Part shown: positions 8,757-47,409 of the stretch, piece by piece
Position numbering within the stretch: the stretch's first letter is position 1
How the letters are laid out: each line of letters begins with the position of its first letter
Assembly (NCBI GenBank): GCA_965644265.1
Contig: OZ286459.1
Span: 139,872,001 to 139,936,000, forward strand
Reading direction: 5' to 3'
DNA: 64,000 nt
Source: Glycera tridactyla
Lineage: Eukaryota
Translations under genes and position numbers: made by a program
Notes under the pieces: model-generated
What the model was told of the DNA's origin: nothing
Databases searched by the model: none
What the model saw: the letters and a program-made list of their open reading frames with translations, nothing else

Positions 8757-10360
8757 TCATAGTCGTCTAAATATTCCCAATTCATGCAGATAACCAAATA
8801 TGTCTGTTGGATCAACTTTCATGAAAAGTTGTGTCATATTTTCTACAGTGTAATACTTTACTCTAGTTTGCGATAGTTTTCTACAGTCGAGCAATAAATG
8901 TTTGACAGTGAGATGGCATCCGCATGCAAAGCAATTAGGATTGCCTTGTTTTTTCAGAAGGTGTGAATGGGTGAGATATGTATGTCCTATCCTCAGACGG
9001 GAAAGTACTATCTCCTCTCTTCTATTCATAGTTCTCACGGGGAATCTGTCCACCAGGTTTGGTCTGATGCGATATAATTTATCTCGCTTTTTGGTTCCCC
9101 ATTCATTCTGCCAGAGTTGGTCAATATAGAGCTTTATTCTTGGTTTGAGGTCAGAATAATGGATTTCCATCTCAGTGACTGGCAAACCTAAAGCCCTTTT
9201 GGCCGCTTCATCGGCTGCCTCATTTCCAGGAATTCCGATATGGCTCGGAATCCAGCAAAGTCTAACAGTCTTTTGATGATCTTTAATTATTTGATACTCT
9301 TGCAAGATTTGCAAGAGTATACAGTTCCTGAGATTTCCCTGCAAGGCCTGCAGAGATGACAGGGAGTCTGAAAATTATGAACTTTTGTTTTTCCGACCTT
9401 GATAAGTATTTGAAAGCCATTAGTAAGGCCCTTAGTTCAGCTGAGAACAGTCGACCAATCAGGTGATCTACAGTAATAAGTTTGTGATTCTGTATAAACA
9501 GCTGCAGATGCTTTGCTGTCACATTTGGATCCATCTGTGAAGATGGCCTCATGATCACTATAACGTGACCTAATCTCTAGGTATCTACTTTTGTATAGCA
9601 ATGGGTTGGTGTTCTCCTTTGTGGACTGAGTCAAGTCCAGATGTATTTGTGGAATGTCACAGTCCCAGTCCGCAATCTGAGCAGGATCCATCTGTGATAT
9701 TGGGAGTGTGCCAAAGTCACAACTTCCAAAGTGATTTTCGACTCCTATTCCAAGAGGAGCAATGACATGGAGATTTTCTTGAAATTCCTGTTTATATTTA
9801 GGCCTGAAGACACTCTCATGTGTTGGATTCGATGGGTTTGCTTTCAATTTCAGACAGTACTGGAGACCTAACTTTATCCTTCGTAGATGAAGTGGAGGTT
9901 CATTGGCTGGTTATGGACTGTATCAAGCATTTTGAGGTTGGTTGGGCATGCAGATCCATAAATCATGCACCCATAATCTAATTTAGATCGAATAAGAGAT
10001 CTGTAAACCATGAGCAGTGTTTCCCGATCAGCTCCCCAGTCCAGGTGGGATAACACCTTCAGCATGTCAAGTGCCCGGAGGCATTTGACTTTGAGTTGCT
10101 GAATATGGGGTTTGAAAGTCAATCGTCGGTCAAAGACCAGGCCTAGGAACTTTGTTTGTTCCACTACTGGTATTGCTGATCCACCTATAAAGAGCTCAGG
10201 TTCATCATGATGCCTTGTTGATCTACAGAAATGCATGCAAACTGTTTTGGTTTTAGAAAACTTAAAGCCATTCTTGTCCGCCCAGTCTTGAAGTTTGTAT
10301 AGGGTTTGCTGTAGTTTCCTCTCCACTACCCGAACTTGTCTAGCTCCATAGCAGATAAGA
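8757..10360 (-). pseudogene. Frameshifted I/Nimb ORF2 C-terminus (RT thumb, RNase H, zinc-knuckle-like motif)
   Basis: KFLGLVFD, RSKLDYG, IFTDGSK, LCWIPSHIGIPGNEAADEAAK, RLRIGHT and CFACGCHLTVKHLLLDC spread over several frames; TGA stop at 8759-8757. Confidence 0.9.
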
Positions 10361-10799
10361 TAAGATAAGATAAGATAAGATAATGTTTATTCATCAGAAG
10401 ACATGTGATCACAAGAATCATATTACATGCTAATGATACATGGGAAGAAAGCAGCCAAGTGACATATTGACTAGGAACAATACATGGTAATAATGGTATA
10501 AATTCAAACAGTGTGGGAGAAAGAGATGAGTGGGATAGGTGAGAGGGAAGAAAAACATGAGAGGAAGTGAGAGATTTGGAGGAGAAAGAGAGGAAAAGGG
10601 AAAAGGGAAAAGCATGGGAATGGAGCAAGAAGGAAAAATACAAAATAATATTGCTAGAGTAAAGGCAAAATGTAGAGAAGGAAACATTTGCTTAGGCAGA
10701 ACTCAAGGAGATCACTGCTGAGGCGTGTACGATGAGCTAAAATGAACTGCTAGTGGACTGGGGATGTCATTTTCAGATGGCGGTCTGACAGAAAACATT

Positions 10800-13745
10800 T
10801 CAACGAAATTCACTAAGATGAAGGGATGTAGCTTTTTTGAATGATGAAATAGTGGGGGAAATTCGGATATCAATAGGTAAGGAGTTCCAAAGAGAGGAAC
10901 CCCTGTATCTGATGTTGCGATCTGGGAAGACTAAGCGGTTACAGGGGTGTGTTAGAAGCATGGAACTATTGTGAGATGATCTGGTCAGAATGTGCAAGGG
11001 AGGGTTTTTAATGGTAAAGAGATTCTTGAGTTCTGGGGGAGATAGGCCATGAATAGCTTTAAAGACTTCAATAGCAGTAGAAAGAGCTCTTGTTGTTTCA
11101 AGCTTCTCCATTTTGAGCTCTTGCCTGAGGTGAGTAGCAGAATAGTGCCAACCAGATTGCATGATGGTACTCATGCAACGGTTATGGGCTACCTGAAGTC
11201 TATTGCAATCAATCGAGTTGCATCCATCATAGATGTGATCACAATAGGAGAAGACTGGCTTAATGAGTGAATTAAAAAGAAAAATGGCCATATTTTCGTT
11301 AATAGATGGTCGGAGAAAAAAGAGGGCACGTCTCCGTAGTGTTACTTTATTGATAATTTTGTGGATATGTTCTGAAAAGTTAAGTGTCGGGTCGAGTGTG
11401 ACACCAAGATACTTATATGAAGTGACATCCAAAATCTGAGTGTTAGCATAAGTCAACTTAAGGGTAGATGATTGGCGAAGACGACGACTGGTACCAAAAA
11501 GCATTGAGCAAGATTTAGTAGTGTTGAGGGTCAATTTTGACTCATTAAACCAGTCCGCAATAGCAGCTAAATCAACGTTCAATCTAAGTTCAATATCATG
11601 TACATCACGTCCTGTATAGCATAGGGCAGTATCATCAGCATATAAGTAAACATCACTGTACCGAATGTTTGAGTACAAATCATTTGTGTAAAGAATGAAG
11701 AGAAGGGGTCCCAAGATGGAACCCTGAGGTACACCGAAGTCCACTTTGGCAAAGGTTGAGATCTGGTCTTTGATTTTTACTGCCTGGCTTCTACCACTGA
11801 GATAGGAACCAAACCAGGCAACACAGTTTTCATGGAAGCCGTATGAGCCAAGTTTATTGAGCAGAAGGTCATGGCATACCGTATCGAAGGCCTTCTTTAA
11901 GTCCAGGAAGAGCACCCCAGTGAGACAGCCCCCCTCAGCCCCCTGATAGATTTTATCAAGGAGCCCAGTGAGGCAGGTCCCAGTGGAGTGGCCCCTCCTG
12001 AATCCGAACTGCCTCCGATACAGTACATCATGAGAAGAGACAAAATCGTATGTTTGGGAGTGGATCAATCTCTCAAAGACCTTACCGAGGACTGGAAGAA
12101 TCGAGATAGGGCGAAAGTTTCCAAAATCAGTAGAAGGACCACTTTTGTGAATTAGGGTGACAATGGCTTTTTTCCAGACAGAGGGAAAAACATTTCTATC
12201 AATAGACATATTGAAAATGCAAGTCAATATGAAAATAATGTCATCGGGGAGAAGTTTGATAACATAAGAGGACAAGCCATCAGGACCAGTGGCTCCGGAG
12301 GAGCTCAAGTTTTTTATGCTGTTTTTAACATCAAAGGTGGTAACGTGTTTGAGTTCGAAAGAGGGATGGGAGGAAGTGGGATGAGGTAACTGAGAGGGAT
12401 GGGAATTATTGTCAAATTTGTCATAAAGATTTTTGCCAATGTTTGCAAAAAATGAGTTTGCTTTTTCTACCAGAGGGATATTAGCGTTTTCCGGTTCATC
12501 ATCAGGGGAAGGACAGGTAGGGGATTTTTGAGTTAAAGGCCAAAGGTTTTTTATCTCCTTCCATAATTTTTTGGGGTCGTCTTTATGTTTGTACAATAAA
12601 TCTGAGATATGGGATTTTTTCAGGGCATGTTTGAGCCGAGTTCTTAAGCGAACAGCTTCACGTTTAAGTTCAAGATTTAGAGTTGTTGGATTTTCATTGT
12701 ACTTTTTACTTCGAAATTCAGCTAGATCAATGAAACTAATGTAGTCAAAGTTGATCCAGGGTTGACTATTTTCACGTATAGGCATGTACTTAAGAGGGGC
12801 AGATTTATCAAGAATTTTTATAATGATTTCCTGAAATTGAGATGCTGCGAGCTCCGGGTTATCCAGTGAGAGATCAGCTTGCTGAAATTCATGTCTTAAT
12901 GAAGATTCAAAGTTATGGGTATTCAATTTTCGGTAGGATCGAATTTGGTGATAAGAAGAGATTTTGGGTAATTTACGTCGGTGTCTGGTGGTGTAAATAA
13001 GTTTGTGGTCACTGAGGGCAGGGTCTAAAGTACCCCAACAGTTATAAAATTCAGGTCTATTTGTAAGAATATGATCAATAAGGCTGGAGGTATTGGCCGA
13101 GATTCTAGTGGGTGATGAAATGATTTGGGAGAGATCATGTGCTTTTAAAAAATCAGAGTAAATTTTGGGAGAACCTCCAATTTCTTCAGAGCAATCAATG
13201 TTAATATCACCAAGAATGAGAATGTCCGCGGGATATTTAAGTGAATCACTTTCTAGAATCTTGTCCAAGGAATCAAGGAAATTAGAGATTGATCCATTGG
13301 GTGGCCTATAAACACAAAAAATATAGGTGGGCCTAGCCTTGGTTAGCTTCAGGCATACTGGTAAGATCTCAGCATCAGGTGAGCAGTGGCACAAGTCATC
13401 AATAATAGTAAGATCATACTGCTGCTGATAGTAGACAAGGAGGCCGCCACCTCCACGCTTACCAGAAGCAGCAGTACGATCAAGGCGGTGAAATTTGTAG
13501 CCAGGTATATACACTTCATTGTCATGTATTGACCCATTGAGAAAAGTTTCATTGATACAGAGACAGTCCAGTGAACTACTAAGAAGCAGAGTTTTCAGGT
13601 CTTCATGCTTCCTAATGATACTACATAGATTAAGAGAGCCAACTGATATGCCGGGAAGATTGGATAAGCACTTGGAGCTGTAGTCAAGATCAGAGAGGGG
13701 TGAGTCAAGAGGAAAGACAAATTTTGGTTTTCTGGGGGGAGGCAT
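10800..13745 (-). CDS. LINE ORF2: apurinic endonuclease plus reverse transcriptase, intact, 981 aa from the first ATG
   Basis: APE motifs SLNLCS, INETFL, GGGGLLVY, VYRPP, LGDINID, PTR, IDH and SDH; RT motifs NFRPISIL, QFGFR, FLDLKKAFDTV, GVPQGSILGP, YADD and YLGV; CR1-group C-terminus RYRGSSLWNSLP. The ORF-track start at 13901 is a TTG; the first ATG is at 13745. Confidence 0.97.
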   Translation of the reverse strand: MPPPRKPKFVFPLDSPLSDLDYSSKCLSNLPGISVGSLNLCSIIRKHEDLKTLLLSSSLDCLCINETFLNGSIHDNEVYIPGYKFHRLDRTAASGKRGGGGLLVYYQQQYDLTIIDDLCHCSPDAEILPVCLKLTKARPTYIFCVYRPPNGSISNFLDSLDKILESDSLKYPADILILGDINIDCSEEIGGSPKIYSDFLKAHDLSQIISSPTRISANTSSLIDHILTNRPEFYNCWGTLDPALSDHKLIYTTRHRRKLPKISSYHQIRSYRKLNTHNFESSLRHEFQQADLSLDNPELAASQFQEIIIKILDKSAPLKYMPIRENSQPWINFDYISFIDLAEFRSKKYNENPTTLNLELKREAVRLRTRLKHALKKSHISDLLYKHKDDPKKLWKEIKNLWPLTQKSPTCPSPDDEPENANIPLVEKANSFFANIGKNLYDKFDNNSHPSQLPHPTSSHPSFELKHVTTFDVKNSIKNLSSSGATGPDGLSSYVIKLLPDDIIFILTCIFNMSIDRNVFPSVWKKAIVTLIHKSGPSTDFGNFRPISILPVLGKVFERLIHSQTYDFVSSHDVLYRRQFGFRRGHSTGTCLTGLLDKIYQGAEGGCLTGVLFLDLKKAFDTVCHDLLLNKLGSYGFHENCVAWFGSYLSGRSQAVKIKDQISTFAKVDFGVPQGSILGPLLFILYTNDLYSNIRYSDVYLYADDTALCYTGRDVHDIELRLNVDLAAIADWFNESKLTLNTTKSCSMLFGTSRRLRQSSTLKLTYANTQILDVTSYKYLGVTLDPTLNFSEHIHKIINKVTLRRRALFFLRPSINENMAIFLFNSLIKPVFSYCDHIYDGCNSIDCNRLQVAHNRCMSTIMQSGWHYSATHLRQELKMEKLETTRALSTAIEVFKAIHGLSPPELKNLFTIKNPPLHILTRSSHNSSMLLTHPCNRLVFPDRNIRYRGSSLWNSLPIDIRISPTISSFKKATSLHLSEFR

Positions 13746-14139
13746 TTGGGTTAGGGAGAGGGGTGATAAGGAGGACAGAGAAAGGATGGAGTATAAGTGA
13801 GGGAAGGAGGAATAAGAAACAGAGGAGCTGGTGGAAGGATAAGTGGGGAGGGGTGTAAAGGAGTAACGGGGTTGGTGGGGTGGGAGGGATGGTGTGCACA
13901 AAGTTGTATGAGAAAATAGAGTGGGATGAGAAAAATAAGTGTGTTAGTTATCTGAGTAGAAGTGGTGGGGAGGTAGTCAAAATGTAGGGGAAGTAGGTGT
14001 ATAAGAGGAGCAAACAGGTGGTAGTAATGATAGTAAGGAATCAGGGGAGCGATCAGGTGGTAGTAATGATTGTCTCATTGATAATTACTCGAAGCCTTTA
14101 TAGAAAGATACATTACTCATATAGATTATGAATTTGTAG

Positions 14140-16159
14140 GTTAGATAAGTGGCCAGAAACCAACCATCTTATGGAACATATAATTGGAGGGATTTAGGTG
14201 AGGGTTTAGTAAGAGTAAGGGAAGAAAAGAATTTTAACTAGGCTCTCTAGAAACTTGCCTGAGCCGGTGGCCCACGTTGTGAGGGCGACTGGACAAAAAA
14301 GATGGAAAGCATGAATCCAATACAGGAAGTTTAAGTAATATGTGAGTATATCATTCCTGAGCACACTGGCCTACGTTGTGAAGGCGAGTGAAATGAGGAA
14401 GATTGAAAGAAGAAAGTTGGACATGTGAGTGAAGAAAAAGAATTCAGCTGAAAGAGAGGGGGGAGGGAAGCTCCAATTGTGTTTTAGAGGTCAAGGTGCA
14501 CAAACCATCATGTTACATGATGTGTGGAATTATAAAGTACAGGTCATATATGCATTGAGAGACAGAACAATTAGTGATGTTGAAGCAGCACATCTAGACA
14601 TAGACCATGCAAAAATTAAGTCAAGAGAACAAAAGCAAGTCTTGTTATGTGAAAGAGGTTTGAGAGAATCGAGTGAAGGTGATATCAAGGTGGATATAAC
14701 TAACAGGTGGGTACAAAATTGTCACTGGGGATACTAGTGAACATGAAGAAATAGTGATTTAACTAACAAACAGGTACTAGCTAACTCCCAGGATAAAAGT
14801 GAACATGTAGAATAAGTATTCAAGAAACAATGCAACATATATACAATTTATGACCAAGTATGGCATCAAGGATATAGTCAACCTCGCATAATGCATCGAA
14901 GAAATGAATTGAATTGAGTTTAAATTGAAATGATACAAGGCATAAATGCACAAAAGGTTCGCATGCACGCTACTTTTCGAGAGGGTACACTGCCGAGTGT
15001 GAGTGCGTGTGTGCGCGCGTGTGAGTGTGAAAGTGTGTGTGTGTGTGCGCATGTAAGCGCGTGTGTGTGTATGAGTGTGTGTGTGCGTGTGAGTGTGCGA
15101 GTGCGTGTGTGTGTGTGCGAGAGTGAGTGTGTGTGTGTGTGAGTGTGAAAGTGTGTGTGTGTATNNNNNNNNNNNNNNNNNNNNNNNNNNNNNNNNNNNN
15201 NNNNNNNNNNNNNNNNNNNNNNNNNNNNNNNNNNNNNNNNNNNNNNNNNNNNNNNNNNNNNNNNNNNNNNNNNNNNNNNNNNNNNNNNNNNNNNNNNNNN
15301 NTGTGTGTGAGTGAGTGATTGTAGAAAAATGGTTAGAAAACAACCATTTTATGGAACAAATAATAGGAGGGATTTAGGTGAGGGTTTTAGTAAGAGTAAG
15401 GGAAGAAAAGAAATTGGAACTAGGCTCTCTAGAAACTTGCCTGAGCCGGTGGCCCACGTTGCAAGGGCGACTGGACAAAAAAGATGGAGAGCATGAATCC
15501 AATATAAGGAAGTTTAGTAATATGTGATTATATCATTCCTGAGAACACTGGCCTACGTTGTGAAGGCGAGTGAAATGAGGAAGATTGAAAGAAGAAAGTT
15601 GGACATGTGAGTGAAGAAAAAGATTTCAGCTGAAAGAGAGGGGGGAGGGAAGCTCCAATTGTGTTTAAGAGGTCAAGGTGCTCAGACCATCATGTTACAT
15701 GATGTGTGGAATTAAAGTACAGGTCATATATGCATTGAGAGACAGAACAATTAGTGATGTTGAAGCAGCACATCTGGACATAGACCATGCAAAAATTATG
15801 TCAAGAGAACAAAAGCAAGTCTTGTTATGTGAAAGAGGTTTGAGAGAATCGAGTGAAGGTGATATCAAGGTGGATATAACTAACAGGTGGGTACAAAATT
15901 GTCACTGGGGATACTAGTGAACATGAGGAAATAGTGATTTAACTAACAAATAGGTACTAGCTAACTCCCAGGAATAAAAGTGAACATGTAGAATAAGTAT
16001 TCAAGAAACAATGCAACATATATACAATTTATGACCAAGTATGGCATCAAGGATATAGTCAACCTCGCATAATGTATCGAAGAAATGAATTGAGTTGAGT
16101 TTGAATTGAAATGATACAAGGCATAAATGCACGAGGGTACGCATGCACGCTGCTTGTCG
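14140..16159. repeat. ~1.0-1.2 kb direct tandem duplication in the esterase-ORF2 spacer
   Basis: ~14160-14975 is nearly identical to ~15338-16159, with scattered substitutions and indels. The copies are separated by a GT microsatellite and an N-gap. Confidence 0.85.
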
Positions 16160-18265
16160 NNNNNNNNNNNNNNNNNNNNNNNNNNNNNNNNNNNNNNNNN
16201 NNNNNNNNNNNNNNNNNNNNNNNNNNNNNNNNNNNNNNNNNNNNNNNNNNNNNNNNNNNNNNNNNNNNNNNNNNNNNNNNNNNNNNNNNNNNNNNNNNNN
16301 NNNNNNNNNNNNNNNNNNNNNNNNNNNNNNNNNNNNNNNNNNNNNNNNNNNNNNNNNNNNNNNNNNNNNNNNNNNNNNNNNNNNNNNNNNNNNNNNNNNN
16401 NNNNNNNNNNNNNNNNNNNNNNNNNNNNNNNNNNNNNNNNNNNNNNNNNNNNNNNNNNNNNNNNNNNNNNNNNNNNNNNNNNNNNNNNNNNNNNNNNNNN
16501 NTGTGTGAGTGAATGTGTGTGTAAGTGTGTGTGTGTGAGTGTGAGTGAGTGCGTGCATGAGTGTGTGTGAGTGAGCGTGCATGCGTGCGTGAGTGTGAGA
16601 GTGTGCGCGCGCGTGTGCGCGTTGCTCGATGTAGCGATTTGTCCATGACAATAAGTAACTAATCAATGCTATTTCTCATTTCAGGTGTACAAATTCCAAC
16701 GGGACGAGGAGCCTGGCTATCCAGGCAAACACTATACAACAACGACAAGAAATGCGAAAAAATGATAGAGAGCAAATTTATGCGTGTGAAACGTCACCCT
16801 AGCGGATGAAGTCGGAATTAATCGCTTCTGCAGCGCCTCCGGCGGTCATTTTGTTAACTATACGAAACAAGATGGCGATGAAGCGTATATTTGACAATTC
16901 GTCGAGGAATAAAGAATCATCTCAGCGAGAAACAGGGCAGGTACGGTGGTTTTAGGCGTGCGAATCGCGTAAACGCTTATACAATAGAGATCGCAATCGT
17001 ATGTCGCGGCCCAGCTGAATTTATTTATCCTGAAAACCGGGATTGTTTGCGAAGAACTTCGAATAACGCTCATTAAATTGCAGGGCTTCCGCGGAATTTG
17101 GTGTTTGTTTACGCGAGGTTTGTTAGATTGAGCATAAACAGGGATATATTCTGTCTGACCGTCTGTCAGCCTGTCACTTGTGTGAAATGAAATGAAGTGA
17201 AATGATCTTCTTAATAGCTCACTCTCAGAAATTATTTTTGGAAAAGATAAATCTTTCTTTCAAAAACTGGATAAATATGCATATGAAAAGTAGACCAAAA
17301 TTAGGGTCCATACATCAAAAGCGTCTGTTTAGTCTGTTGTGGATCATTGACAAAATAAAACAAATCTAACCAAAAGCTAATGGAAAAACATGACATGAGT
17401 CAAACTTCACAAATTCTGTACATTCATCTGAAGAAATACACAATATTCATGGGCAGTTTTGTGGTGAAAATTAGTCATATATGTACTGCATGGGCAGTGG
17501 GATGAGGAGGGTACTGCTGATTACATCATCTGAAAACATCCCTCTCACTTGTGAGTAGATGGGATACACTGGCTAGTCGGGACTTTGTTTACACACCTAC
17601 ACTGTTGTTCCCAGGTCATACATGTAATCAGTAACCTCAATTTGTGGTTATGATGGGCCAATCACAGGAATAAAATTGTAGAGAACTACAAATCTGGTAG
17701 GGAATTGCCGATATCCTTTGGGCAGGGAAAGGTTGGAATATAGGAACATATCCTGCCATGTAGGTACTTATCTNNNNNNNNNNNNNNNNNNNNNNNNNNN
17801 NNNNNNNNNNNNNNNNNNNNNNNNNNNNNNNNNNNNNNNNNNNNNNNNNNNNNNNNNNNNNNNNNNNNNNNNNNNNNNNNNNNNNNNNNNNNNNNNNNNN
17901 NNNNNNNNNNNNNNNNNNNNNNNNNNNNNNNNNNNNNNNNNNNNNNNNNNNNNNNNNNNNNNNNNNNNNNNTCACTAACACACACACAAACTCACACACA
18001 CACATAAACTCACATACGCACGCACACACTCACACACGCATACACACCCACACACACTCACACACACACACTCACACATACACACACACACACACACCCA
18101 CTCACACACACACCCACACACATACACAAACACTCACACACATATGCGCCCACACGCGCACACACACACACCCCCACACTCACACACACACTCACACGCA
18201 AGCACACGCCCCACACACACGCACACACACACTCACTCACACACACTCACACACAGACATACACA
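14995..18265. repeat. Imperfect (GT)n blocks (14995-15164, 15302-15316, 16502-16620) and a (CA)n block (17972-18265) adjoining assembly gaps
   Basis: Read directly. N-runs at 15165-15301, 16160-16501 and 17774-17971. Confidence 0.95.
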
Positions 18266-18292
18266 AACAACATCTAAACCTTTTCATGATCC

Positions 18293-18395
18293 AACAAGGC
18301 CACGGAGGGGCAAGATACCCCACACATGGGAGCACTGTGAGTAATCTATATCACACACGGGAACACAGTGGGTAACCCACCATGTAGAAGGTCAT
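18293..18395 (+). mobile_element. 5'-end fragment of the HINE family seen at 45949
   Basis: AACAAGGCCACGGAGGGCAAGATACCC...ACACGGGAACACAGTGGGTAACCCA matches 45949-46040. Confidence 0.75.
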
Positions 18396-18596
18396 TGGAA
18401 CATGAGACTCGAGCATGTAAAAGTTACATGCCAGTTACACATGATAAGAAAAACAGACCAAGTATCCAATATTGTGATTGTTAAGGTATTATGAGATGTA
18501 TCATCTTGGAGTATTCCACCACAGTATACATAAGACCAAGCATGCATAAGTTACATTCATAGGGCACCAAAAGCAAAAACACTGACTATTTGCAGC

Positions 18597-19403
18597 TTAT
18601 TTATTTCTGATTTTCCACCAGTCCATGATTGATGGGAGGATGTCTCGGAAGACTGCCTGATAACCATATTCATTTAGATGGACATTATCAGGCTTGAGAA
18701 AGCCTGGGATGATGTCATCTAACTCTCCAGTTGCAATTTTGGGTTTCTTTTCATGCCAGTATAGGGATCGGGTTTTCAGTTCACGTACATGATATAAACT
18801 TTTGAAATAGTAGTGAAAAAGATAACTAATGTGATTGGCAAGACGATGAGTATCGTCACTCCACCCGCATCGAGGAAATATGGGGATAAAGCCAAGTTTA
18901 GAGTCAGGAAATGTAGAGGAGATATCAAGCAATAAGGAGTCAAGGTGGTTGAACATGCCCTCAAACCATTCAGTGCACACATTTTCAATCTCATGGTCAT
19001 AAGCTGTTCCGGTAAGAGATTGGCTGAGGGTAACCTGGTGGGATTCTAGATCCGCACAATCATTACCTCCAATTAGAATTACAGTATAGTCAGGGGTAAA
19101 ACCTGTAGATATAATGGTATCCCATTGATTGCCATAGAGGAGGACTTTCTCATGGCTCATATGGAGACCGCGAAGATTTGCTTTGAGCTTCCAAATTTTC
19201 GATCCCCTAACACCAAGAAATTTAGCGTTGGATAGAAAGGGTTGAATGTCATTGGTAGCAAAGTTTTTGATCTCATCGGAGGCACGGGCAATGTGACTGT
19301 CACCCAAGAAAAGTATATTCGGAGCACCAAGATTTCTTAAGGTGAGTTTGGGTCTGTCAAGTCGATCGGTGCCAGAAGCTGGTGTCACTCTCTGAATCGC
19401 CAT
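18597..19403 (-). CDS. Stand-alone SGNH/GDSL-family esterase ORF (268 aa) inside the LINE
   Basis: Block I LFLGDSH, block II GVRG, block III IGGND and block V PDNVHLN; the Ser-Asp-His triad residues are all present; ATG start and no internal stop. Confidence 0.9.
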   Translation of the reverse strand: MAIQRVTPASGTDRLDRPKLTLRNLGAPNILFLGDSHIARASDEIKNFATNDIQPFLSNAKFLGVRGSKIWKLKANLRGLHMSHEKVLLYGNQWDTIISTGFTPDYTVILIGGNDCADLESHQVTLSQSLTGTAYDHEIENVCTEWFEGMFNHLDSLLLDISSTFPDSKLGFIPIFPRCGWSDDTHRLANHISYLFHYYFKSLYHVRELKTRSLYWHEKKPKIATGELDDIIPGFLKPDNVHLNEYGYQAVFRDILPSIMDWWKIRNK

Positions 19404-20246
19404 ATTCGTATGATGTTCAGTGCACTCCTGTCAAAATAATCATAGTCATAACTAGATATAACTCGAGAAAAATGAATTTGGATAGGATTGTTATGAGTGG
19501 GAAATTAAAGTATGAAAAATCGAGTGTGAATAATCGAGCTAAAAGGAATTAAGGAGGCTGATTCAGCTAATGTATACAAGATATTCAATTAGGGTGAATT
19601 ACCCAGGTGAGGCATGTAAAAACAAGTAAAGTAATCATGTTACATCACAGGGATATAAAAACAAACAAAATTAATCATGTTACATCACAGCTCAAGGTAA
19701 TAATATCCATGATTAATGATGAGGAGGATCAGTCAATGGTGGGAGGTAAACATTTATGTGGTACAGCAAGATGAGATTTCCAAATCATGGGCACATGCAT
19801 ATGAAATAATTCAATCAAGTAGAAGTAGTACATAGTAAATGGCAAGTATGAACAATGTAAGGAATACTATCACAAAATAATTAGTGTGATTTGAGTAAAG
19901 GTAAAACAGGTGATTGAGCATTAGGTGCGAGGATAACAAATATATCAAGAAGTGTATTCGTCCATGATTAAATGAAATGAAATGAAATCACTGATATAAT
20001 TGAAATCACTGGCCGACGTTGTGAGGGCGAGTGAGGCGGGGGGGGGGGGGGGGGGGGGGGTGATGTACATTCAAATCAGCTGATTGAGCAATAATGGAAT
20101 GAGAATGATGTAGATTGTGAATAAAATTTCATAAAAAATTTTTTTTTTTTTTAAAAAGAAAAATTTATAAAGTAAACTTACAAGAGGCGGCATAGGGTAG
20201 CGAATGTGGTATTGTTGGTAGATCGGAATTTGAGCCATGATTCAGG

Positions 20247-22389
20247 CTAAAGAGCCAGGTTGGAGAAGCGATTGTAGGTGTTAATTCTGTAATCTGGGAG
20301 AGGAAAATTGCGAGCGTGTTGAAGAGAAGGTGAAGGACGAGGATTGTTGCTGTGCGAGCGGCCACTTCGACGCAAGCAGGAGGCACTGATCCAGGGGTTA
20401 GCGTTGCTCGCATGTAAGTCACGGTGGTTATTGTGGCTCAGATCAGAGTGATTTGCGAAACTGGGTTGCTTTACCCGGGTGTTAACGTGACTCAACCTAG
20501 TACTGGGCTCATCATTATGTACTTGATCGGCAGAAATGAGAAAGCCTGAAGCATGACTTGATTGTTTAGACCTGGAAGCAGAAAGTTGATTAGATTGTTG
20601 AGCATTGGGAGGGAAAACAGATCCAGTATGTTGAAGGCTAATGTTGCTGGTAGTTGTGTAAGATTGGATACCACTTACTGGAGGTGAAATTCCATCATTT
20701 TTGGTAGTGATGGGCTGATATTCAGGTATTTCCCCCTGGGGCAAGTTGTTCAAGGTAGGTTTACGTAGACCAAATGAGGATCTATTTTCAGAAAGCAATT
20801 CAGGCATAGTAGAGTTAGGACGAGTGGCCCAAACTAGGCCATCATAAGACCAAACACGTGTGTATTCATTGTTTTTCTTAGACATTCTGGCATTGTAGTA
20901 GGTCTTGGTGTTTCGAGACGTTAGATATTCTTTGATAAAGACCTGTGTACCTCTTAGATGACCCTTCATTTTGAGAAGATATCTCTTCAAGTTGACATCC
21001 TTAAAGCGCACTAATATTGGGCGAGGATGTAGGCCTTGTTTACCGAGAAAAGAGCACTTTTCAATGTCATTAGGAGAAACACTGAGGCCAAGAGTTTGAT
21101 CTATGCAGTATATCAGATTTTCTGAGATTGAGAAATTGGGATAAATGATGACACCCTCGAAGATGAGTGAACAGAGACGATTGGAAATTTCTAGACTTTC
21201 AACACGATCAGATAGTTTGGAGATGTCATTTTCTATAGGTGGAGTTGGGTCAGCAGAACTCTTAGAAGTAGGAGGCCCAGATGAAAAGAGAGATTTGACA
21301 TCTTTTTTGATAACTTCGATAGAGTGCTCATGTGCGAGTAACTCCTGTTTGACTTCTAGAGTGATTTCATGCTTGAGCTCAGCTATGACACTGGCCCTGA
21401 TCTCATCCTTAATTGATTGATATAGTTCAGCTTTCAAGTCATGGTACAACTCATCTTTCAGGGCAGGTAGAAGTTTGAGCTTGAGATCATGAACATCAAC
21501 TTGGGAGGGGGGGGGGGGACAACTGAGTGATATTGAAACTGGGGGATTGGATCGACATGCTGGATGATAGATCAGGTACTGAGCGAGACTTTTGTGCTAG
21601 AGGAATTGATGAACAAGAACTGGTAAAAGAAGACTGTTCTGTAATCAGTTCAGGATTTTGACTAGGTTGATGACCGAGACATCTTCTCTTCTCTGGGTCT
21701 TCGATGGGATCATCAGTAGGTGAGAAACAGTCATTTTTCCTCTTGGGCAGTTTCTGGCGAATGATTTGTGGAGCCGAACTATGTCTAAGTCTACCATTGT
21801 TTATGGAGTTGGACAGATCATCAGGTAGGCGCTGGACAGAAACGATGGGGCTTAGGATGGCCAGATTGGGAAGGCCAGAGTTACATAAAATGTTACCAGA
21901 GTACTTAGAGAGATCCGTAACTGTAGGTGTACTAGTTAGATCAGCCTGTGAAGCTGAAGGTGGAGCTTTGAAGACAGGAGGAGAAACGTCATGAGTTGAA
22001 AGATCACGGGCGGCACATTGTGAATCACAGGCGGCACGTTGCGCAGATTGTTTGAAGTTGGTCGGTGACATCTCTGTTGAAGAGGGACAACCAACTTCAG
22101 ACTCATCAGCAGGCCAATCAAGGGAAGAATTGGCACTAGAAGGCATATCCCCGATGTGGACAGAATGATGAATGATGGAGTGTTGAGAGGTTGACACTTC
22201 CGCCGAAGTAATAGGTTGAAGAGCAATGTCAGAGAGAACAACGACAGGGCTGACCTTGAGTTGCAGGTTGCAGCTTGCATTATCACTCAGGTCACTCTGG
22301 CCAGTTGAACTAAATGAGCTGTCAAGTCCTTCAAGTGAGGAACTTGTCTTACTATTTGTATTAGAATGGAGCCTTGGACTGTCCGACAT
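20247..22389 (-). CDS. LINE ORF1, ~714 aa (Ser-rich N-terminus, coiled coil, RRM plus C-terminal domain of L1-ORF1 type, Ser-rich tail), split by a 1-nt shift in a C12 run
   Basis: ORF-track entries 21496-22389 and 20247-21449 fuse if one C is removed at 21507-21518 (..QLSPPP/SQVDVHDLKLKLLPALKDELYHDLKAEL..). Motifs: DRVESLE..NRLCSLIFEGV, IEKCSFLG, PRPILVRF, VFIKEYLT, VWSYDGLVW. The downstream ORF has only a TTG start. Confidence 0.85.
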
Positions 22390-23951
22390 CGTTTCGTTCG
22401 TTGGTTGGTTAGATCAGTTGTCTAGAAGAAGAAAACCGCACTTTGATCGCTCCCCCGGTTCGGCGTTTACACGTCAGTCATATGGTGCGCCGCGTCCTGA
22501 AACCAAGTCATCTACATATAAGGAGCAATTGGTGTCCTGGGAGAGGCATTCAACGATACTATTCATTTTAATGCTGAAAAGGGTAACTGATAGGATGCTT
22601 CCTTGTGGGACCCCCATTCATCACACAACCTAGTAAACCTAGTCGCAGCCCTAGTAACCCAGAACTGATGTGCCTGGTACCCGCGTTTTGCATAGTGACA
22701 ATATCTGCTACAGGCAAACCATCAGCCACCCACACCCGAGACCATTTCACTGAAGAAATAAGAAATAGCTTAGAGGGATAGGTTCATCATGATGCCTTGT
22801 TGATCTACAGAAATGCATGCAAACTGTTTTGGTTTTAGAAAATTTAAAGCCATTCTTGTCCGCCCAGTCTTGAAGTTTGTATAGGGTTTGCTGTAGTTTC
22901 CTCTCCACTACCCGAACTTGTCTAGCTCCATAGCAGATGAGAAAGTCATCTACATATAAGGAGAAATTGGTGTCCTGGGAGAGGCATTCAACGATACTAT
23001 TCATACTATTCAATATCTGCTACAGGCAAACCATCAGCCACCTACACCTGAGACCATTTCACTGAAGAAATAAGAAATAGCTTAGAGGGATAGGAAAGAG
23101 GTCAAGAAAAAGAGATCTGGTGATAGTGCAATTTTGGTAGAAAATGCCTAAAGATAGATGATAGAAAATTTTGAAGGTATGTTTTCATTCTACCCCCCAT
23201 TCCAAAAGATATTGAGAAGAGAAGGGATGATGCTACACCTAGGCCACATCATCCCCAATGGCAACACTTCAATAGTGTAATACTTTACTCTAGTTTGCGA
23301 TAGTTTTCTACAGTCGAGCAATAAATGTTAGACTGTGAGATGGCATCCGCATGCAAAGCAATTAGGAGTGCCTCGTTTTTTCAGGATTTGTGAATGGGTG
23401 AGATATGTATGTCCTATCCTCAAAAAGGGAAGGTATAATCTCCTCTCTTCTATTCATAGTTCCCACAGGAGATCTGTCCTCCAGTTTTGGTCTGATGCGA
23501 TATAATTTATTTTGCTTTTTGTCTCCCCATTCATTCTGCCAGAGTTTTATCCTTGCTTTATCCTTGGTTTGAAGTCTGAATAGTGGATTGCAGAGATGAC
23601 AGGGAGTCTGTGAAAATTATGAACTTTTGTTTTTCCGACCTTGATATGTATTTGAAAGCCATTAGTAAGGCCCTCAGTTCAGCTGAAAACACTGTTGACC
23701 GATCAGGTAACCTGCAGTAATAGGTTTGTGATTCTGTATAAACAGCTGCAGATGCTTTGCTGTCACATTTGGATCCATCGGTGAAGATGGCCTCATGATC
23801 ACTATGATGTGACCTAATCTCTAGGTATCTACTTTTGGATAGCGCTGGATTGGTGGTCTCTTTTGTGGACTGAGCTAAATCCAGATGTATTTGTGGAATG
23901 TCACAGGATCCATCTGTGATATTGGGAGTGTGTCAAAGTCACAACTTCCAA

Positions 23952-25487: not shown

Positions 25488-26676
25488 GCTACCAAATCTT
25501 GTTCAATGCTCTTTGGTACCAACCGTCGACTGCACCAGTCACCTACCCTAAAATTATCTTGCGACAACACACAAATTTCTAATGTAACTTCTTACAAGTA
25601 TCTTGCCATCACTCTTGACCCCTCTCAATTTCTCAGAACATATTCACAAAATTATCAATAAAGTTGCTCTTCAGAGACGTGCCCTCTTCTTTCTTCGACC
25701 ATCCATTGATGAAAGTATGGCTATCTTTCTCTTTAATTCACTCATTAAACCAGTCTTCACATATTGCGATTACATCTATGATGGATGTAACTTAGTCGAT
25801 AACAAGACTTCAGGTAGCACACAACCGTTGTTTGAGTACCATCACACAGTCAGGTCGGCACTATTCTGCCACTCATCTCAGGCAAGACCTCAAAATGGAG
25901 AAACTTGAAACAACAAGGGCTATTTCTACTGCTTTGGAAGTCTTTAAAGCCCTCCATGGCCTCTCTCCCCCAGATGTCAAGAATCTATTTACCATTAAAC
26001 ATCCTACCTCGCACATTCGGACCAGATCAACTTACCACAGTAGCATGCTACTTACACACCCCTGTAATCGTTTAATTTTCCCTGATCGTAACTTCAGATA
26101 CAGAGGTGCTGCTCTCTGGAACTCTCTGCCTGTTGAACTTCGAAATTCCCCCACCATTTTATCATTCAAAAAAGATACATCCCTTTACTTAAGTGAATTC
26201 CGCTAAAACTCTGATTGTATTTGACCGTCATTTTTTTTTGGTCAGACCACCATCTGACAATTTTCTTTGACTTTTCTGCAGTTTTTATCTACCTAACTAC
26301 ATACCCCTCTGCACTGATCTTCTTTGAGTTCTGCCTGAACAAGTTTATTCCCCTCTCCTGCTTTTGTCCTCTGCGAGTCAATCTCACATTGAAACCTTAC
26401 CCTACACGTCTTCTCTATTCCCGCTTGCTCCCCTGCTCACACTTTCCTCTTATTCTGCCCCCTCTCTATCATCTCACTATCACCGCCCTTCACTCATCAT
26501 ACCATATCTATTCCTGCCATCTGATTCATCCCTTTCAAATTTTATGCTTTTACTCTTCTTACCATGTTAGTTCCTAGTTACATGTCACTTGTTCGATGTC
26601 ACCCTGTATCATTAGCATGTAACATGATTCTTGTGATCACATGTCTTCTGATTAATAAACATTATCTTATCTTATC
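25488..26676 (+). mobile_element. 5'-truncated sister-subfamily copy of the 12-kb LINE (ORF2 C-terminus, 3' UTR, TTATC tail)
   Basis: Peptides KSCSMLFGT..RRALFFLRPSI..RYRGAALWNSLP..LSEFR closely match ORF2 at 10800-11540, and the terminal ~55 nt are nearly identical. It splits the CR1 host at SF|LEG with no TSD. Confidence 0.93.
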
Positions 26677-44315: not shown

Positions 44316-45948
44316 CTAAAAATGAATTGAAATAACATGAATTGCACAAAATTGGTTCATGCTACATAAAAAAATAAATGATCCAGGCAGTATTATCGTA
44401 AATAACTGAGTATCTATTCGTCAAGCTGAGAGTAGATTCTGACTGGGTCAAAACAAGTAAGCAGTTGAGGGTTCAAAATGAGGTGTTAGTGATGAGCTAC
44501 TGGTTGCAGCCAGTAGCTTAAGTAGGTGAATAATGTCTAAGCGAGGGTGAGGACGATGCAATATCAGTTGTGAGAATAGGACAGTTAAACAAGATGAGTG
44601 AATGGAAGGTGGATGATTGATAGGATAGACTACATGGTTTATTGTCCTTCCCCAGGACACATGGGCTATACATGTATCATGGCTGGTTAATTGTGTGTGT
44701 CATCAAGTCTCATCAACACCACATGATCTTGACATCCTGGCCAATGTATTATCTTGTGTAGGGATGTTATTAGCTAACAATAAAGGTCCCTGAAACCTGT
44801 CGGAGGTCAATTTCCACATTTTATTGTGAACAATGCAGACCCTAACAACTTAGCAATCTAGTGGACACATTCGGCCTTTTTGACCGGTCGCTTTCATTAT
44901 GTATGGCATGATCGTTTAGTACTTTCTGTATTCAGATCGCACCCAACAAATTTCTTCTGACCATGAATTTCAACGCTTGTCTGGAACTGATAAAGTTGTT
45001 GAAGGGAGGTCACATGACTCATCTTATGGTGACAGTCACCTATAAACAGCAATTCGGCGAATTACTTCATTATCAAATATCAATATAGCAGCTTTCTCAA
45101 AGAACAAGCATCTAGTGAGGCAGTATCCTGCTATATGTGGTCTCTACTCTCCCCTTTCTCCCCTCGCCTCTCACCTCTCTACTGTTCCCTTCCCCTCATT
45201 ATTCTATCAGTTGTCATCCATTTTGAATATAGTTAAGAAATATCTTGATAGATCTGAAACCAGTACTGATGTAATAGATTATAGAATTAGACCAATTAGA
45301 GGCCAGTATTTGGCCGAAAATTGCTGAAGCGTGATGGTGCACTGATTGGTTCTGAAAGCCCTTGTATGAGTTCACAGTTCTGATATGGAAGCCCTGCAAT
45401 CAGCGACTCAAGAGATAATGGTTGGGAACCAATGTGTGACGGAAGGACAAATGGACAGAGGGCATTTCAATAGTCCTAAATGGCGTGGGACAATAAGCCA
45501 GCCTGATGGGTGGAATTGATAAGCACTTCAAATGCCAAGAAAAGATTATTATGGCAGATTCGATGACGTAAACCAACAATGCCATCTTGGATGTTTCCGT
45601 ATGACATGGTCTATTTGGGTGGTGAGTTTGCATTGAGCACATTTTGTAATCTGCGCAGATGGGCAGAGCTCAGTGAAAGTGACCAGTCAAATAGGTTTTA
45701 TGATTCAAGAAAAGTTATATGGCAGACATGTCATATTCCCTGGCCTAAGTTCTGTGGAACTATAGTATCCCTGCTATGAGATAAGACTAGTTCACACTGG
45801 TGGCGAGCCAAGGTTCGAGTAGAATGTGAGCATTTGGGTCCAGCTCCAAAATGTAATGTATCCTACTATCAATACAATATTAACATATGTACATTATTCA
45901 CTTGCGGTTGTTTGCTTGAGTCCCTGACATTGCACAAAATCAAGATTT

Positions 45949-47409
45949 AACAAGGCCACGGAGAGGCAAGATACCCTGCACACGGTAGCACAGTGGGTCA
46001 CCCATATCATACACGGGAGCACAGTGGATCACCCATATCGGAAAAGTTCAGTGAGATGTTTGGTTGGCTATGTAATAGGTCACTGGGTCACTGTGTAGAA
46101 TGTGAAAATCTAATAGTAGCACCTGTAACCTTCACCTTGACCTATGACTTAGGGTCACATGCATTGAAAGGGAGATGTTGCAACATTGCTTGATCATCCC
46201 AGGTCAATTTGATCTTTATCCAACAATGCTAGCCTGAGTTATTGTGTGAGATCCGGATATCAAACATAGCTCCGGTGACCTTGACATTTGACCTAGGGTC
46301 ACATGCATCGAAAAAGAGATGTCTCACCATTGGGTAATTACTTTGTGTATGTTTGGTGCATATTGATCAATGCAAGCCTGAACTGGATTGTAAAATGAGA
46401 AAATCTTTAAATAATTCCTGTGACCTTGACCTTTGATCTAGGGTCACCTACATCGACAGGGAGATGTCCCATCATTGGATCATTGTGCTGTGTGAATTTG
46501 GTCAATATCTATCAAAGCTAGCTTGAGTTATAGTGTGAAAAAAGAAAGTCTATAAATAGCTCCTGTGACCCTGACCTTTGACCTAGGGTCACATACCGGT
46601 GCATTGAAAGGGAGATGGCCCACCATAGGGTGAATAATTAATGTAGGTTTGGTGCATCTACTTCCATGCTAGCTTGAGTTAGTGCATAAAATAAGAAAAA
46701 TCTATGAATAGCTCCTGTGACCTTGATCTTTGACCTAAGGTCAAATGTATCGAAGGAAGGTGGCCCACCATTGGGTGATCACTTTGGGGTTACATGCATC
46801 GAAAGGGAAGTGGCCCACCATCGGGTGATCACTTTGTGTAAGTTTGGTATACATCCATCAATGGTAGCATGAGTTAGAGTGTAAAATGGGAAAATCTATG
46901 AATAGCTCCTGTGACCTTGACCTTTGACTTAGGGTCACATGCATCGAGAGGGAGATGGGTGATTATGTTGTGTAAGGTTGGTGCATATCCATCAAGGTTA
47001 GCTTGAGTTAGTGTAAAATAAGAAAATCTATGAATAGCTCCTGTGACCTTGACCTTTGACCTAGGGTCACATGCATCGAAAGGTAGGTGGCCCACCATTG
47101 CGTCATTAATTTGTGTGAGTTTGGTGCATATCTGTCGACGCTAGCTCGAGTTAGAGTGTAAAATAAGAAAATCTATAAATAGCTCCTGTGACCTTGACCT
47201 TTGACCTTTGGGTACAAAAATCAAATTCCGGAATACGATTTTTACATAGATCACAGTTATGGAGTTTTATGAAAATTGGATCAGCCAATCCAAAGTTATT
47301 GCATGAAATGTGAGCGGAGGGACGGACGGACGTACGGACAGACGGACGTACGGACGCCGGAGGTGAAACTATAATACCCCGCTTTTTCAAGAGCGGGGAA
47401 TAAAAAAAA
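45949..47409 (+). mobile_element. Complete Helentron-associated HINE with ~120-bp tandem units
   Basis: Starts AACAAGG after TTT; about 8-9 GTGACCTTGACCTTTGACCTAGGGTCAC units; GGAC microsatellite; terminal hairpin CCCCGCTTTTTCAAGAGCGGGG (47377-47398) and an A-tract. Confidence 0.9.

Follow-up and report, generated by a model that had tools for sequence, protein, structure and literature searches.

A probable three-gene LINE lineage combining an L1-type ORF1, a separate SGNH esterase gene and an APE-RT ORF2, represented by one copy in Glycera tridactyla

The element described here is a long interspersed nuclear element (LINE) that occupies a single minus-strand block (10353-22504) in a 64,000-nucleotide stretch of the Glycera tridactyla genome (assembly GCA_965644265.1, contig OZ286459.1, positions 139,872,001 to 139,936,000 of the forward strand). 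The whole of this stretch is called the window below, and coordinates refer to it unless another locus is named. The element carries an open reading frame 1 (ORF1) with a predicted L1-type RNA recognition motif (RRM) and C-terminal domain (CTD), a gene of its own for a hydrolase of the SGNH/GDSL type (the esterase), and an ORF2 that has a domain for an apurinic/apyrimidinic endonuclease (APE) and one for a reverse transcriptase (RT). We consider it highly probable that the element is a young copy from a lineage of APE-type LINEs whose tails are microsatellites and whose normal gene set consists of these three genes, and sequence comparison shows that they are inherited together. This supports the original prediction, made from the sequence alone, that one LINE combines an ORF1 of the RRM type with a dedicated esterase gene and an ORF2 encoding APE and RT. 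Its description of the element as tricistronic is in keeping with the separate ORFs of the window copy and of the relatives L001 and L008 but does not fit every member, since in the relative L010 the frame of ORF1 runs on into the first esterase exon and the esterase may be made as a fusion with ORF1p.

The genes and their parts, in the order in which the element would be transcribed, are the following:

21496..22389, minus strand, first frame of ORF1, 297 aa, Ser/Pro/Thr-rich N-terminal part from the ATG (ORF listing)
21507..21518, minus strand, C12 homopolymer in the overlap of the two ORF1 frames (sequence, frames)
20247..21500, minus strand, second frame of ORF1, stop TAG at 20249-20247 (translation, AlphaFold2 (AF2) model, PDB fold search)
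20182..20238, minus strand, putative esterase exon 1, 19 codons (MAQIPIYQQYHIRYPMPPL) (three-frame translation, alignment to homologue N-termini)
19428..20181, minus strand, candidate spliceosomal intron, 754 nt, phase 0, GTAAGT...ttattttgacag (colinearity with intronless homologues)
18597..19427, minus strand, esterase exon 2, within which the ATG-initiated ORF is 18597-19403, 268 aa (Pfam, 21-sequence alignment, AF2, Foldseek)
10800..13745, minus strand, ORF2, 981 aa from the first ATG, intact, APE about 12990-13630, RT about 11390-12150 (Pfam)

Gene order and shared descent

The 981-aa ORF2 is intact as predicted, and Pfam assigns to it Exo_endo_phos (2.5e-09), Exo_endo_phos_2 (3.2e-12) and RVT_1 (6.1e-33). 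With the APE preceding the RT in one ORF, no long terminal repeats (LTRs), a (TATCT)n tail and a precise single insertion, the element has the features of an APE-type LINE. The hints as to its clade are indirect: an RNase H domain was not detected, the tail is a microsatellite, and there are sister ORF2s with a PHD finger, which is N-terminal in ORF2s of nearby clades of the ORF2 tree. Relatives in which the surroundings of the esterase could be read are:

L001, 9.7-kb contig, GCA_029979705.1: ORF1, 784-aa esterase ORF, 971-aa APE-RT ORF, (TAA)n tail
L008, 10.4-kb contig, GCA_013332675.1, same family as L001: ORF1-esterase-ORF2, (TAA)n tail
L010/L011, metagenome contig and GCA_013332675.1: 269-aa esterase, 810 nt, APE-ORF2 37% identical to that of the window
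L013, metagenome contig: ORF1 (E 3e-15 to that of the window), 697 nt, 314-aa esterase

The L001 family is the nearest relative of the window element for all three genes, with identities of 30% for the ORF1 core (E 3e-26), 33% for the esterase and 40% over 965 aa for ORF2. In a tree of the 59 nearest ORF2s, one clade unites the window, L010, L001 and L009 sequences with a Shimodaira-Hasegawa-like approximate likelihood ratio test (SH-aLRT) value of 100, the upstream context of L009 being too short to judge gene order. It is because the nearest relative is the same for each gene and the esterase-linked ORF2s form one clade that co-inheritance is taken as shown. Both L001 and L008 are gap-free and full-length. 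Their similarity over 9.65 kb is 99.67%, the (TAA)n tails are of unequal length, and L001 ends inside its tail, with the 3' flank outside the contig. ORF1 carries a 1-bp indel in both, though not the same one, and a private stop besides in L001.

The expected order ORF1-esterase-ORF2 is found in full in L001 and L008 and in part in L010/L011 and L013. This shared order in diverged families, together with the single ORF2 clade, argues that the gene order belongs to the lineage and not to one copy. Where context is readable, the esterase relatives adjoin LINE ORFs; the neighbours of the L012 esterase are two short unannotated ORFs only, and seven further contigs, of 1.3-4.7 kb, have no informative neighbour. 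The original prediction had also named findings that would speak against it, namely copies lacking the esterase, termini or a target-site duplication belonging to the esterase segment, or a one-off chimera of two LINEs or a scaffolding join across the N-gaps, and none of these was found.

The esterase

The predicted 268-aa ORF with an intact GDS-G-GND-DxxH series was confirmed at 18597-19403. Its SGNH blocks are complete (GDSH, G67, GGND and D239-x-x-H242), giving the catalytic set Ser36, Gly67, Asn114, Asp239 and His242 (residue numbers count from the ATG, 19403), and Pfam reports Lipase_GDSL at 26.4 bits (cut-off 23.6). Ser36 and His242 do not vary in an alignment of 21 esterases with identities of about 25%, and Gly67, Asn114 and Asp239 hardly vary. 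The AF2 model, with a predicted local distance difference test (pLDDT) score of 90.3, has a three-layer alpha/beta/alpha flavodoxin-like fold, for which Foldseek lists 3p94, 1vyh, 7pzg and 2hsj (E about 1e-06, probability 1.0), and the fold matches are GDSL lipases, PAF acetylhydrolase Ib and sialate O-acetylesterases. Judged by these sequence features, the esterase is a stand-alone SGNH/GDSL hydrolase with a complete catalytic set and predicted activity.

Only 91 relatives of the esterase were found among 1.84 billion protein representatives, the best of them 33% identical; those that match over nearly the full length are mostly about 240-340 aa long. The searches of AlphaFold DB and the Atlas returned generic SGNH neighbours only, and a tyrosine-recombinase protein with an SGNH fold is among the structure-search listings. 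The esterase ORF of L001 (L001 3958-5415) extends by about 485 residues of low-complexity sequence rich in Asn, His, Tyr, Thr and Ser, a similar tail is present in the homologue P0045, and the window esterase ends right after the domain.

Selection was assessed from the differences between the window and contigs of run set X1, which are about 99% identical over ORF1 and the esterase and may be paralogues or alleles:

Esterase exon 2: 6 synonymous, 0 non-synonymous (p about 1e-4; 2e-3 with a generous synonymous fraction)
Esterase exon 1: 1 synonymous, 0 non-synonymous (position 20233, GCT to GCA, read by hand)
ORF1 core and tail: 6 synonymous, 1 non-synonymous
ORF1 N-terminal part: 3 synonymous, 5 non-synonymous

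All seven differences in the esterase gene are thus synonymous, and a 188-nt X1 piece inside the candidate intron has 3 base differences and 2 indels. Neutral decay after insertion would not give such counts, small as the numbers are; the differences arose under constraint on the genes. L001 and L008 differ at 32 positions, too few for dN/dS.

ORF1

The core of ORF1 is, in its modelled structure, an L1-type RRM plus CTD, in keeping with the RRM-type ORF1 of the original prediction. The AF2 model spans 21290-20700, was built from two sequences and has a mean pLDDT of 64.8; its core (pLDDT 75-89) runs beta-alpha-beta-beta-alpha-beta and then alpha-beta-beta. The ten best folds in a search of the PDB are all human LINE-1 ORF1p (2yko, 2ykp, 2ykq, 2ldy), either trimers or RRM-CTD, with E down to 4.4e-06 and 156-172 columns aligned, and ordinary RRMs follow them only at E>=5e-03. 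It is this ranking that points to an L1-type ORF1. The helix that precedes the RRM in the model is heptad-like in sequence by look and is a candidate coiled coil.

Sequence searches were less informative, as the PDB gave chance matches only, and a word-index search returned nothing for the window ORF1 and only its own near-copy for the L001 ORF1. Feature neighbours in the Atlas are the Baculo_FP_2nd and Transposase_22 clusters, which we treat as a lead only. For the N-terminal part, similarity to the L001 ORF1 was not found.

ORF1 had been read as one ORF of 714 aa with a coiled coil and RRM/CTD. It consists instead of two different frames that overlap at the C12 run, where the 714-aa reading needs a frame change. 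The second frame opens at about 21590, ends with the stop at 20247-20249 and comprises a helical, heptad-like part (about 21171-21480), the RRM and CTD (about 20822-21170) and a low-complexity tail to the stop. The X1 contigs break exactly at the C12 run, and the frame break could be either decay or an error of homopolymer length in the assembly.

A candidate intron between ORF1 and the esterase

The 0.84-kb interval between ORF1 and the esterase, which had been described as a spacer, is mostly made up of the 57-nt esterase exon 1 (20238-20182) and a 754-nt GT-AG candidate intron. The ATG of exon 1 stands 8 nt past the ORF1 stop in a frame differing from that of ORF1, with a TGA two codons upstream; GTAAGT follows directly after the exon, and 754 nt on ttattttgacag precedes GAG TGC ACT..., in frame with the esterase ORF. 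Exon 1 can be aligned with (L/I)PIY(R/Q)R, an N-terminal motif conserved in the homologues P0001, P0003, P0005 and P0006, the two exon pieces abut on P0001 with no gap or overlap, and intronless homologues carry the motif in one ORF.

A comparable arrangement is seen in L013, where a 15-codon exon 1 ending in ATT is followed by GTAAGT, the same donor hexamer as in the window, and after 521 nt by tattttcag before CCA. In the window, L012 and L013 the distance from the acceptor AG to the Ser codon downstream of it is exactly 43 codons, in L010/L011 the acceptor is 4 nt off, and six loci of five families (L001, L008, L002, L003, L004 and L007) read straight through the acceptor point. Exon 1 of L010 is continuous with the upstream ORF, whose stop TAA lies inside the predicted donor (AT followed by GTAACT; L010 260-270), so that splicing would drop the stop and fuse ORF1p in frame to the esterase. 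From these sequences we propose a candidate phase-0 GT-AG intron ancestral to the lineage and lost in some families, such loss being expected when spliced RNA is copied back. The searchable literature yielded no report of a LINE with a conserved intron in one of its coding genes.

The candidate intron also holds A14 and C23 runs (window 20040-20160) and two copies of a 40-nt repeat. The X1 contigs stop at these A14 and C23 runs, which makes the lengths of the two runs in the assembly uncertain.

The L010 arrangement speaks for another explanation, in which the esterase is a C-terminal domain of ORF1p reached by splicing or frameshift, the LINE encodes two proteins, and the separate ORFs seen here are the outcome of decay. 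The frame of exon 1 in L013, open for >80 codons upstream, speaks for the same explanation. In the window, by contrast, exon 1 has its own ATG, with the TGA shortly before it and a frame unlike that of ORF1, and an X1 contig spans this stretch without indels. The esterase ORF of L001 and L008 likewise starts at its own ATG 146 nt past the ORF1 stop, with stops between, and the five intronless homologues that were aligned in full (P0002-P0006) are stand-alone ORFs of 273-338 aa. On this evidence we regard a two-protein LINE as improbable, and we retain the reading of a LINE whose esterase is a gene of its own.

Insertion site and continuity of the block

The outer parts of the element and its target are:

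22780..23004, minus strand, uninterrupted I-element RT paralogue, the 'empty site' (flank alignments 98.4% and 99.4%)
22390..22504, minus strand, 5' untranslated region (UTR), 115 nt (junction with the I-element flank at 22504/22505)
10384..10799, minus strand, 3' UTR, 416 nt (between the ORF2 stop and the tail)
10353..10383, minus strand, 3' tail (TATCT)n, about 6 units, its final 8 nt matching the target TCTYATCT (Tandem Repeats Finder (TRF), sequence)

The 5' end of the element lies at 22504/22505, and the I-element RT resumes beyond the tail. One continuous I-element copy, at 22780-23004, matches both the 62 nt of 5' flank (98.4%) and the 155 nt of 3' flank (99.4%). In that copy just 8 nt, TCTCATCT, separate the two matches, and these 8 nt resemble the tail unit of the LINE. 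Contig loose ends from other I copies (run sets X1 and X2) read TCTTATCT at the target, which is the LINE tail unit. It follows that the block is a single insertion with a tail repeat matched to the target, and no target-site duplication is visible when the filled and empty sites are compared. The claims that the block is a single interruption of an I-element RT with an empty-site paralogue about 430 bp away, and that the 5' UTR, 3' UTR and tail lie on one strand with the genes, were borne out. An Rfam scan of 10300-22600 gave no match.

The I-element is locally duplicated around the insertion (22640-23100), and this duplication supplies the empty site. An 83-nt piece (ctatccctctaagc...gcagatattg) and an RT stretch are each present twice, about 310 bp apart, and in the first I-element copy the RT frame is broken after ...catgatgaac, where it runs into the repeated piece.

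Between the esterase and ORF2 the window has a long spacer with the following parts:

13746..18596, minus strand, esterase-to-ORF2 spacer, 4851 nt including 677 N (self-BLAST, N runs, TRF, unit alignment, word depth)
18284-18424, high-copy repeat fragment, about 140 bp (word depth about 700 in run sets X1 and X3)
17978-18269, (AC)n (TRF)
17774-17971, 16160-16501 and 15165-15301, three N-gaps (N runs)
16502-16619 and 14997-15162, GT-type microsatellites (TRF)
15322-16159 and 14142-14979, 838-bp unit in two copies, 95% identical (self-BLAST, unit alignment)
about 13750-13960, minus strand, pyrimidine-rich leader, about 200 nt before the ORF2 ATG (sequence)

The duplication, the microsatellites and the repeat fragment imply a native spacer shorter than 4.85 kb, and relatives have spacers of 0.8-1.1 kb; the suggestion that part of the spacer is nested foreign DNA or duplication was correct. 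The repeat at 18284-18424 is probably a fragment of a short interspersed nuclear element (SINE) or a miniature inverted-repeat transposable element (MITE) nested in the LINE spacer. A second copy of it lies at 45940-46035, and the run sets X1 and X3 are labelled as different organisms. In the L008 spacer (L008 5990-6660), about 7 copies of a motif of about 25 nt resembling (A/C)AATCCAnnnAGnAGnGGCnTTAG can be seen by eye, two of which were recovered by a strict pattern search (0.02 expected); the motif could be a protein-binding or translation element.

All three N-gaps of the window fall in this spacer, each adjoining a GT or AC microsatellite, and no ORF crosses one. Their position, with a gap-bounded copy of the 838-bp unit exactly between the esterase and ORF2, is what would be expected of a scaffolding chimera in which the half with ORF1 and the esterase and the half with ORF2 derive from separate elements or loci brought together across the gaps, and the comparison with X1 contigs covered 18280-22600 only. 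We nevertheless consider such a chimera very unlikely, as both outer flanks fit one continuous I-element target, L001 and L008 hold all three genes on gap-free contigs, and each of the three window genes is closest to the L001 family. In addition, copy 2 of the unit, which sits between two gaps, has a GT microsatellite abutting its left edge, a junction without counterpart in copy 1, and this fits a real tandem repeat better; the 838-bp pair is more likely a tandem repeat of unit plus (GT)n than a misplaced allele.

A two-ORF LINE in which the esterase is a secondary insertion, whether of an element or of a host gene, and travels as a passenger in this copy only could draw on the foreign or duplicated DNA in the spacer and on a candidate intron such as host genes have, yet there is very little room for it when the esterase segment lacks termini, a tail and a target-site duplication belonging to it alone, keeps its position and order in families with ORF2s only 36-40% identical, has just the 91 relatives, adjoining LINE ORFs wherever context is readable, and differs from another copy at synonymous sites only.

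Several points weigh against the interpretation of a three-gene lineage with an ancestral intron. In the window, the three gaps mean that continuity between the esterase and ORF2 rests on scaffolding, matching flanks and concordant phylogeny, and the frame change needed at the C12 run means that this copy may be dead or the run mis-sized. ORF1 has no Pfam match at E<=10, Transposase_22 included, and its model has the two-sequence input and the mean pLDDT given above. The selection test comprises 7 + 7 + 8 sites, compared with X1 contigs that may be either paralogues or alleles. As regards the intron, the one predicted in L010 is in phase 2 and not phase 0, exon 1 of L012 was not found in the 583 nt available upstream, the X1 contigs (library type unknown) show no splice joints, and a run search found no RNA runs holding the element. 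Every relative with readable context belongs to one of two assemblies or to a single metagenome, and sequences that are identical or 99.7% identical recur among these sources (identical proteins in the metagenome and one assembly, a 99.7%-identical element in the two assemblies), so they may represent one species or close relatives, and two organisms is the safe count. Finally, the esterase of ZfL2-1 is absent from the PDB sequence matches (E<=1) and from the top 50 folds, and a common origin with known LINE esterases is not established by those searches; this non-match says little, because the ZfL2-1 structure was crystallised as two half-domains.

Relation to known systems

ORF1 proteins of LINEs are classed into RRM types and an esterase type. 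The esterase-type ORF1p of CR1/L2 LINEs was reportedly described by Kapitonov and Jurka in 2003. None of the esterase-bearing ORF1p in Repbase had an RRM, and the question was raised whether the two duplicate or exclude each other (Schneider et al., 2013; PMC3905857); in the same work ZfL2-1 ORF1p bound liposomes, and a membrane or lipid role was proposed (PMC3905857). Type II ORF1p, with coiled coil, RRM and CTD, occur in human L1 and in some CR1/L2/Daphne elements (Khazina and Weichenrieder, 2009; Metcalfe and Casane, 2014, PMC4120745), and esterase and Transposase_22 ORF1s appear as alternatives only in Metcalfe and Casane (2014; PMC4120745) and in a 2026 vertebrate CR1-group survey. The architecture had not been recognised as a described one, and we likewise found no description of a three-ORF or tricistronic LINE with an esterase in the searchable literature (Repbase lay outside the search).

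The element resembles those with Type IV ORF1p (ZfL2-1 of zebrafish; RTEX) in having an SGNH esterase with conserved catalytic residues upstream of an APE-RT ORF2 and no poly(A) tail. In ZfL2-1-like elements, however, the esterase is a domain of the sole ORF1p, placed after a coiled coil and without an RRM, whereas here it has no coiled coil and is a gene of its own, with its own ATG and a stop upstream, intron-split in several families by our prediction and following an L1-type ORF1 with RRM-CTD. Likeness to L1-type ORF1p lies in the helix followed by RRM and CTD, with 2yko, 2ykp and 2ykq as the best structures; the differences are the missing Transposase_22 match and the long disordered N-terminal part and C-terminal tail. 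The described Type II ORF1p elements are without an esterase gene, unlike the window element.

A similar ORF3 is carried by Ngaro tyrosine-recombinase retrotransposons. A DIRS/Ngaro preprint mentions SGNH. Stand-alone GDSL/SGNH ORF3s are known from bdelloid Vesta LTR retrotransposons and Athena/Terminon Penelope-like elements, and known LINE esterases do not cluster with the Vesta/Athena ORF3s in a comparison of which the window's family was not part (PMC5408684). The window element is like Vesta and Athena in that a retroelement carries a separate accessory gene for an esterase whose catalytic residues are intact. In Vesta, Athena and Ngaro (LTR, Penelope-like and tyrosine-recombinase classes) the esterase follows pol, while in the window it stands between the gag-like and RT genes.

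In retroviruses, the env mRNA is a case of splicing used for an accessory gene, and splicing would in a like manner control accessory-protein expression here. Penelope-like elements keep introns (PMC3846280), and the candidate intron resembles theirs in being a sense-strand GT-AG intron, predicted here from sequence, that is kept in genomic copies of an element replicating through RNA.

A possible life cycle and its implications

By homology, ORF1p would be an RNA-binding chaperone that binds the element RNA, and target-primed reverse transcription by ORF2p would integrate the element, with the tail repeat pairing with the TCTYATCT target. In unspliced RNA the start codon of exon 1 would yield a short peptide only. 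In spliced RNA, the esterase ATG 8 nt after the ORF1 stop could allow re-initiation and thus production of a 295-aa enzyme with the N-terminal motif. By analogy with ZfL2-1 ORF1p, the esterase may tie the ribonucleoprotein to acidic membranes or lipids, leaving RNA binding to ORF1p. The spacer of the window copy would have been inflated by the tandem duplication, microsatellites and repeat fragment.

It can be speculated, with somewhat less confidence than doubt, that an old LINE lineage keeps the intron at a fixed codon as a splicing switch, comparable to that of retroviral env, in which the unspliced RNA is both the genome and the ORF1p message and the spliced RNA gives the esterase, free or fused to ORF1p. 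In such a switch the esterase may be free in elements of the window and L001 type and fused in those of the L010 type, and, together with the L1-type RNA chaperone, it may move or assemble the ribonucleoprotein on membranes. If the switch exists, RRM and esterase are complementary and not alternatives as Schneider et al. (2013) suggested. That their functions can be complementary is already suggested by their presence as separate genes, by the purifying selection and by the divergence of the ORF2s to 36-40% identity. With separate genes, it is possible to delete the esterase and leave the RNA-binding protein intact, which opens the role of the esterase in retrotransposition to direct testing. 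It would be unusual for several families of an RNA-copied element to keep an intron at one codon, and this would bear on which RNA species serves as LINE template and on intron loss via reverse transcription.

Related sequences in the window

A 5'-truncated related LINE at 25489-26676 (plus strand) is 75% identical to 10369-11521, that is, to the end of ORF2 and the 3' UTR, and shows that a second, older family of the same lineage is present in the window.

A near-palindromic motif, TGATGTAACATGA, has 14 matches against 4.1 expected. Hairpins formed by it were considered as a mechanism and dropped, the folding being no better than that of shuffled sequences (z -1.5, -0.5 and +1.2). The motif occurs twice in the candidate esterase intron (19635-19647 and 19675-19687), in both copies of the 838-bp spacer unit (14508-14520 and 15690-15702) and in the 3' UTR of the related LINE (26615-26627).

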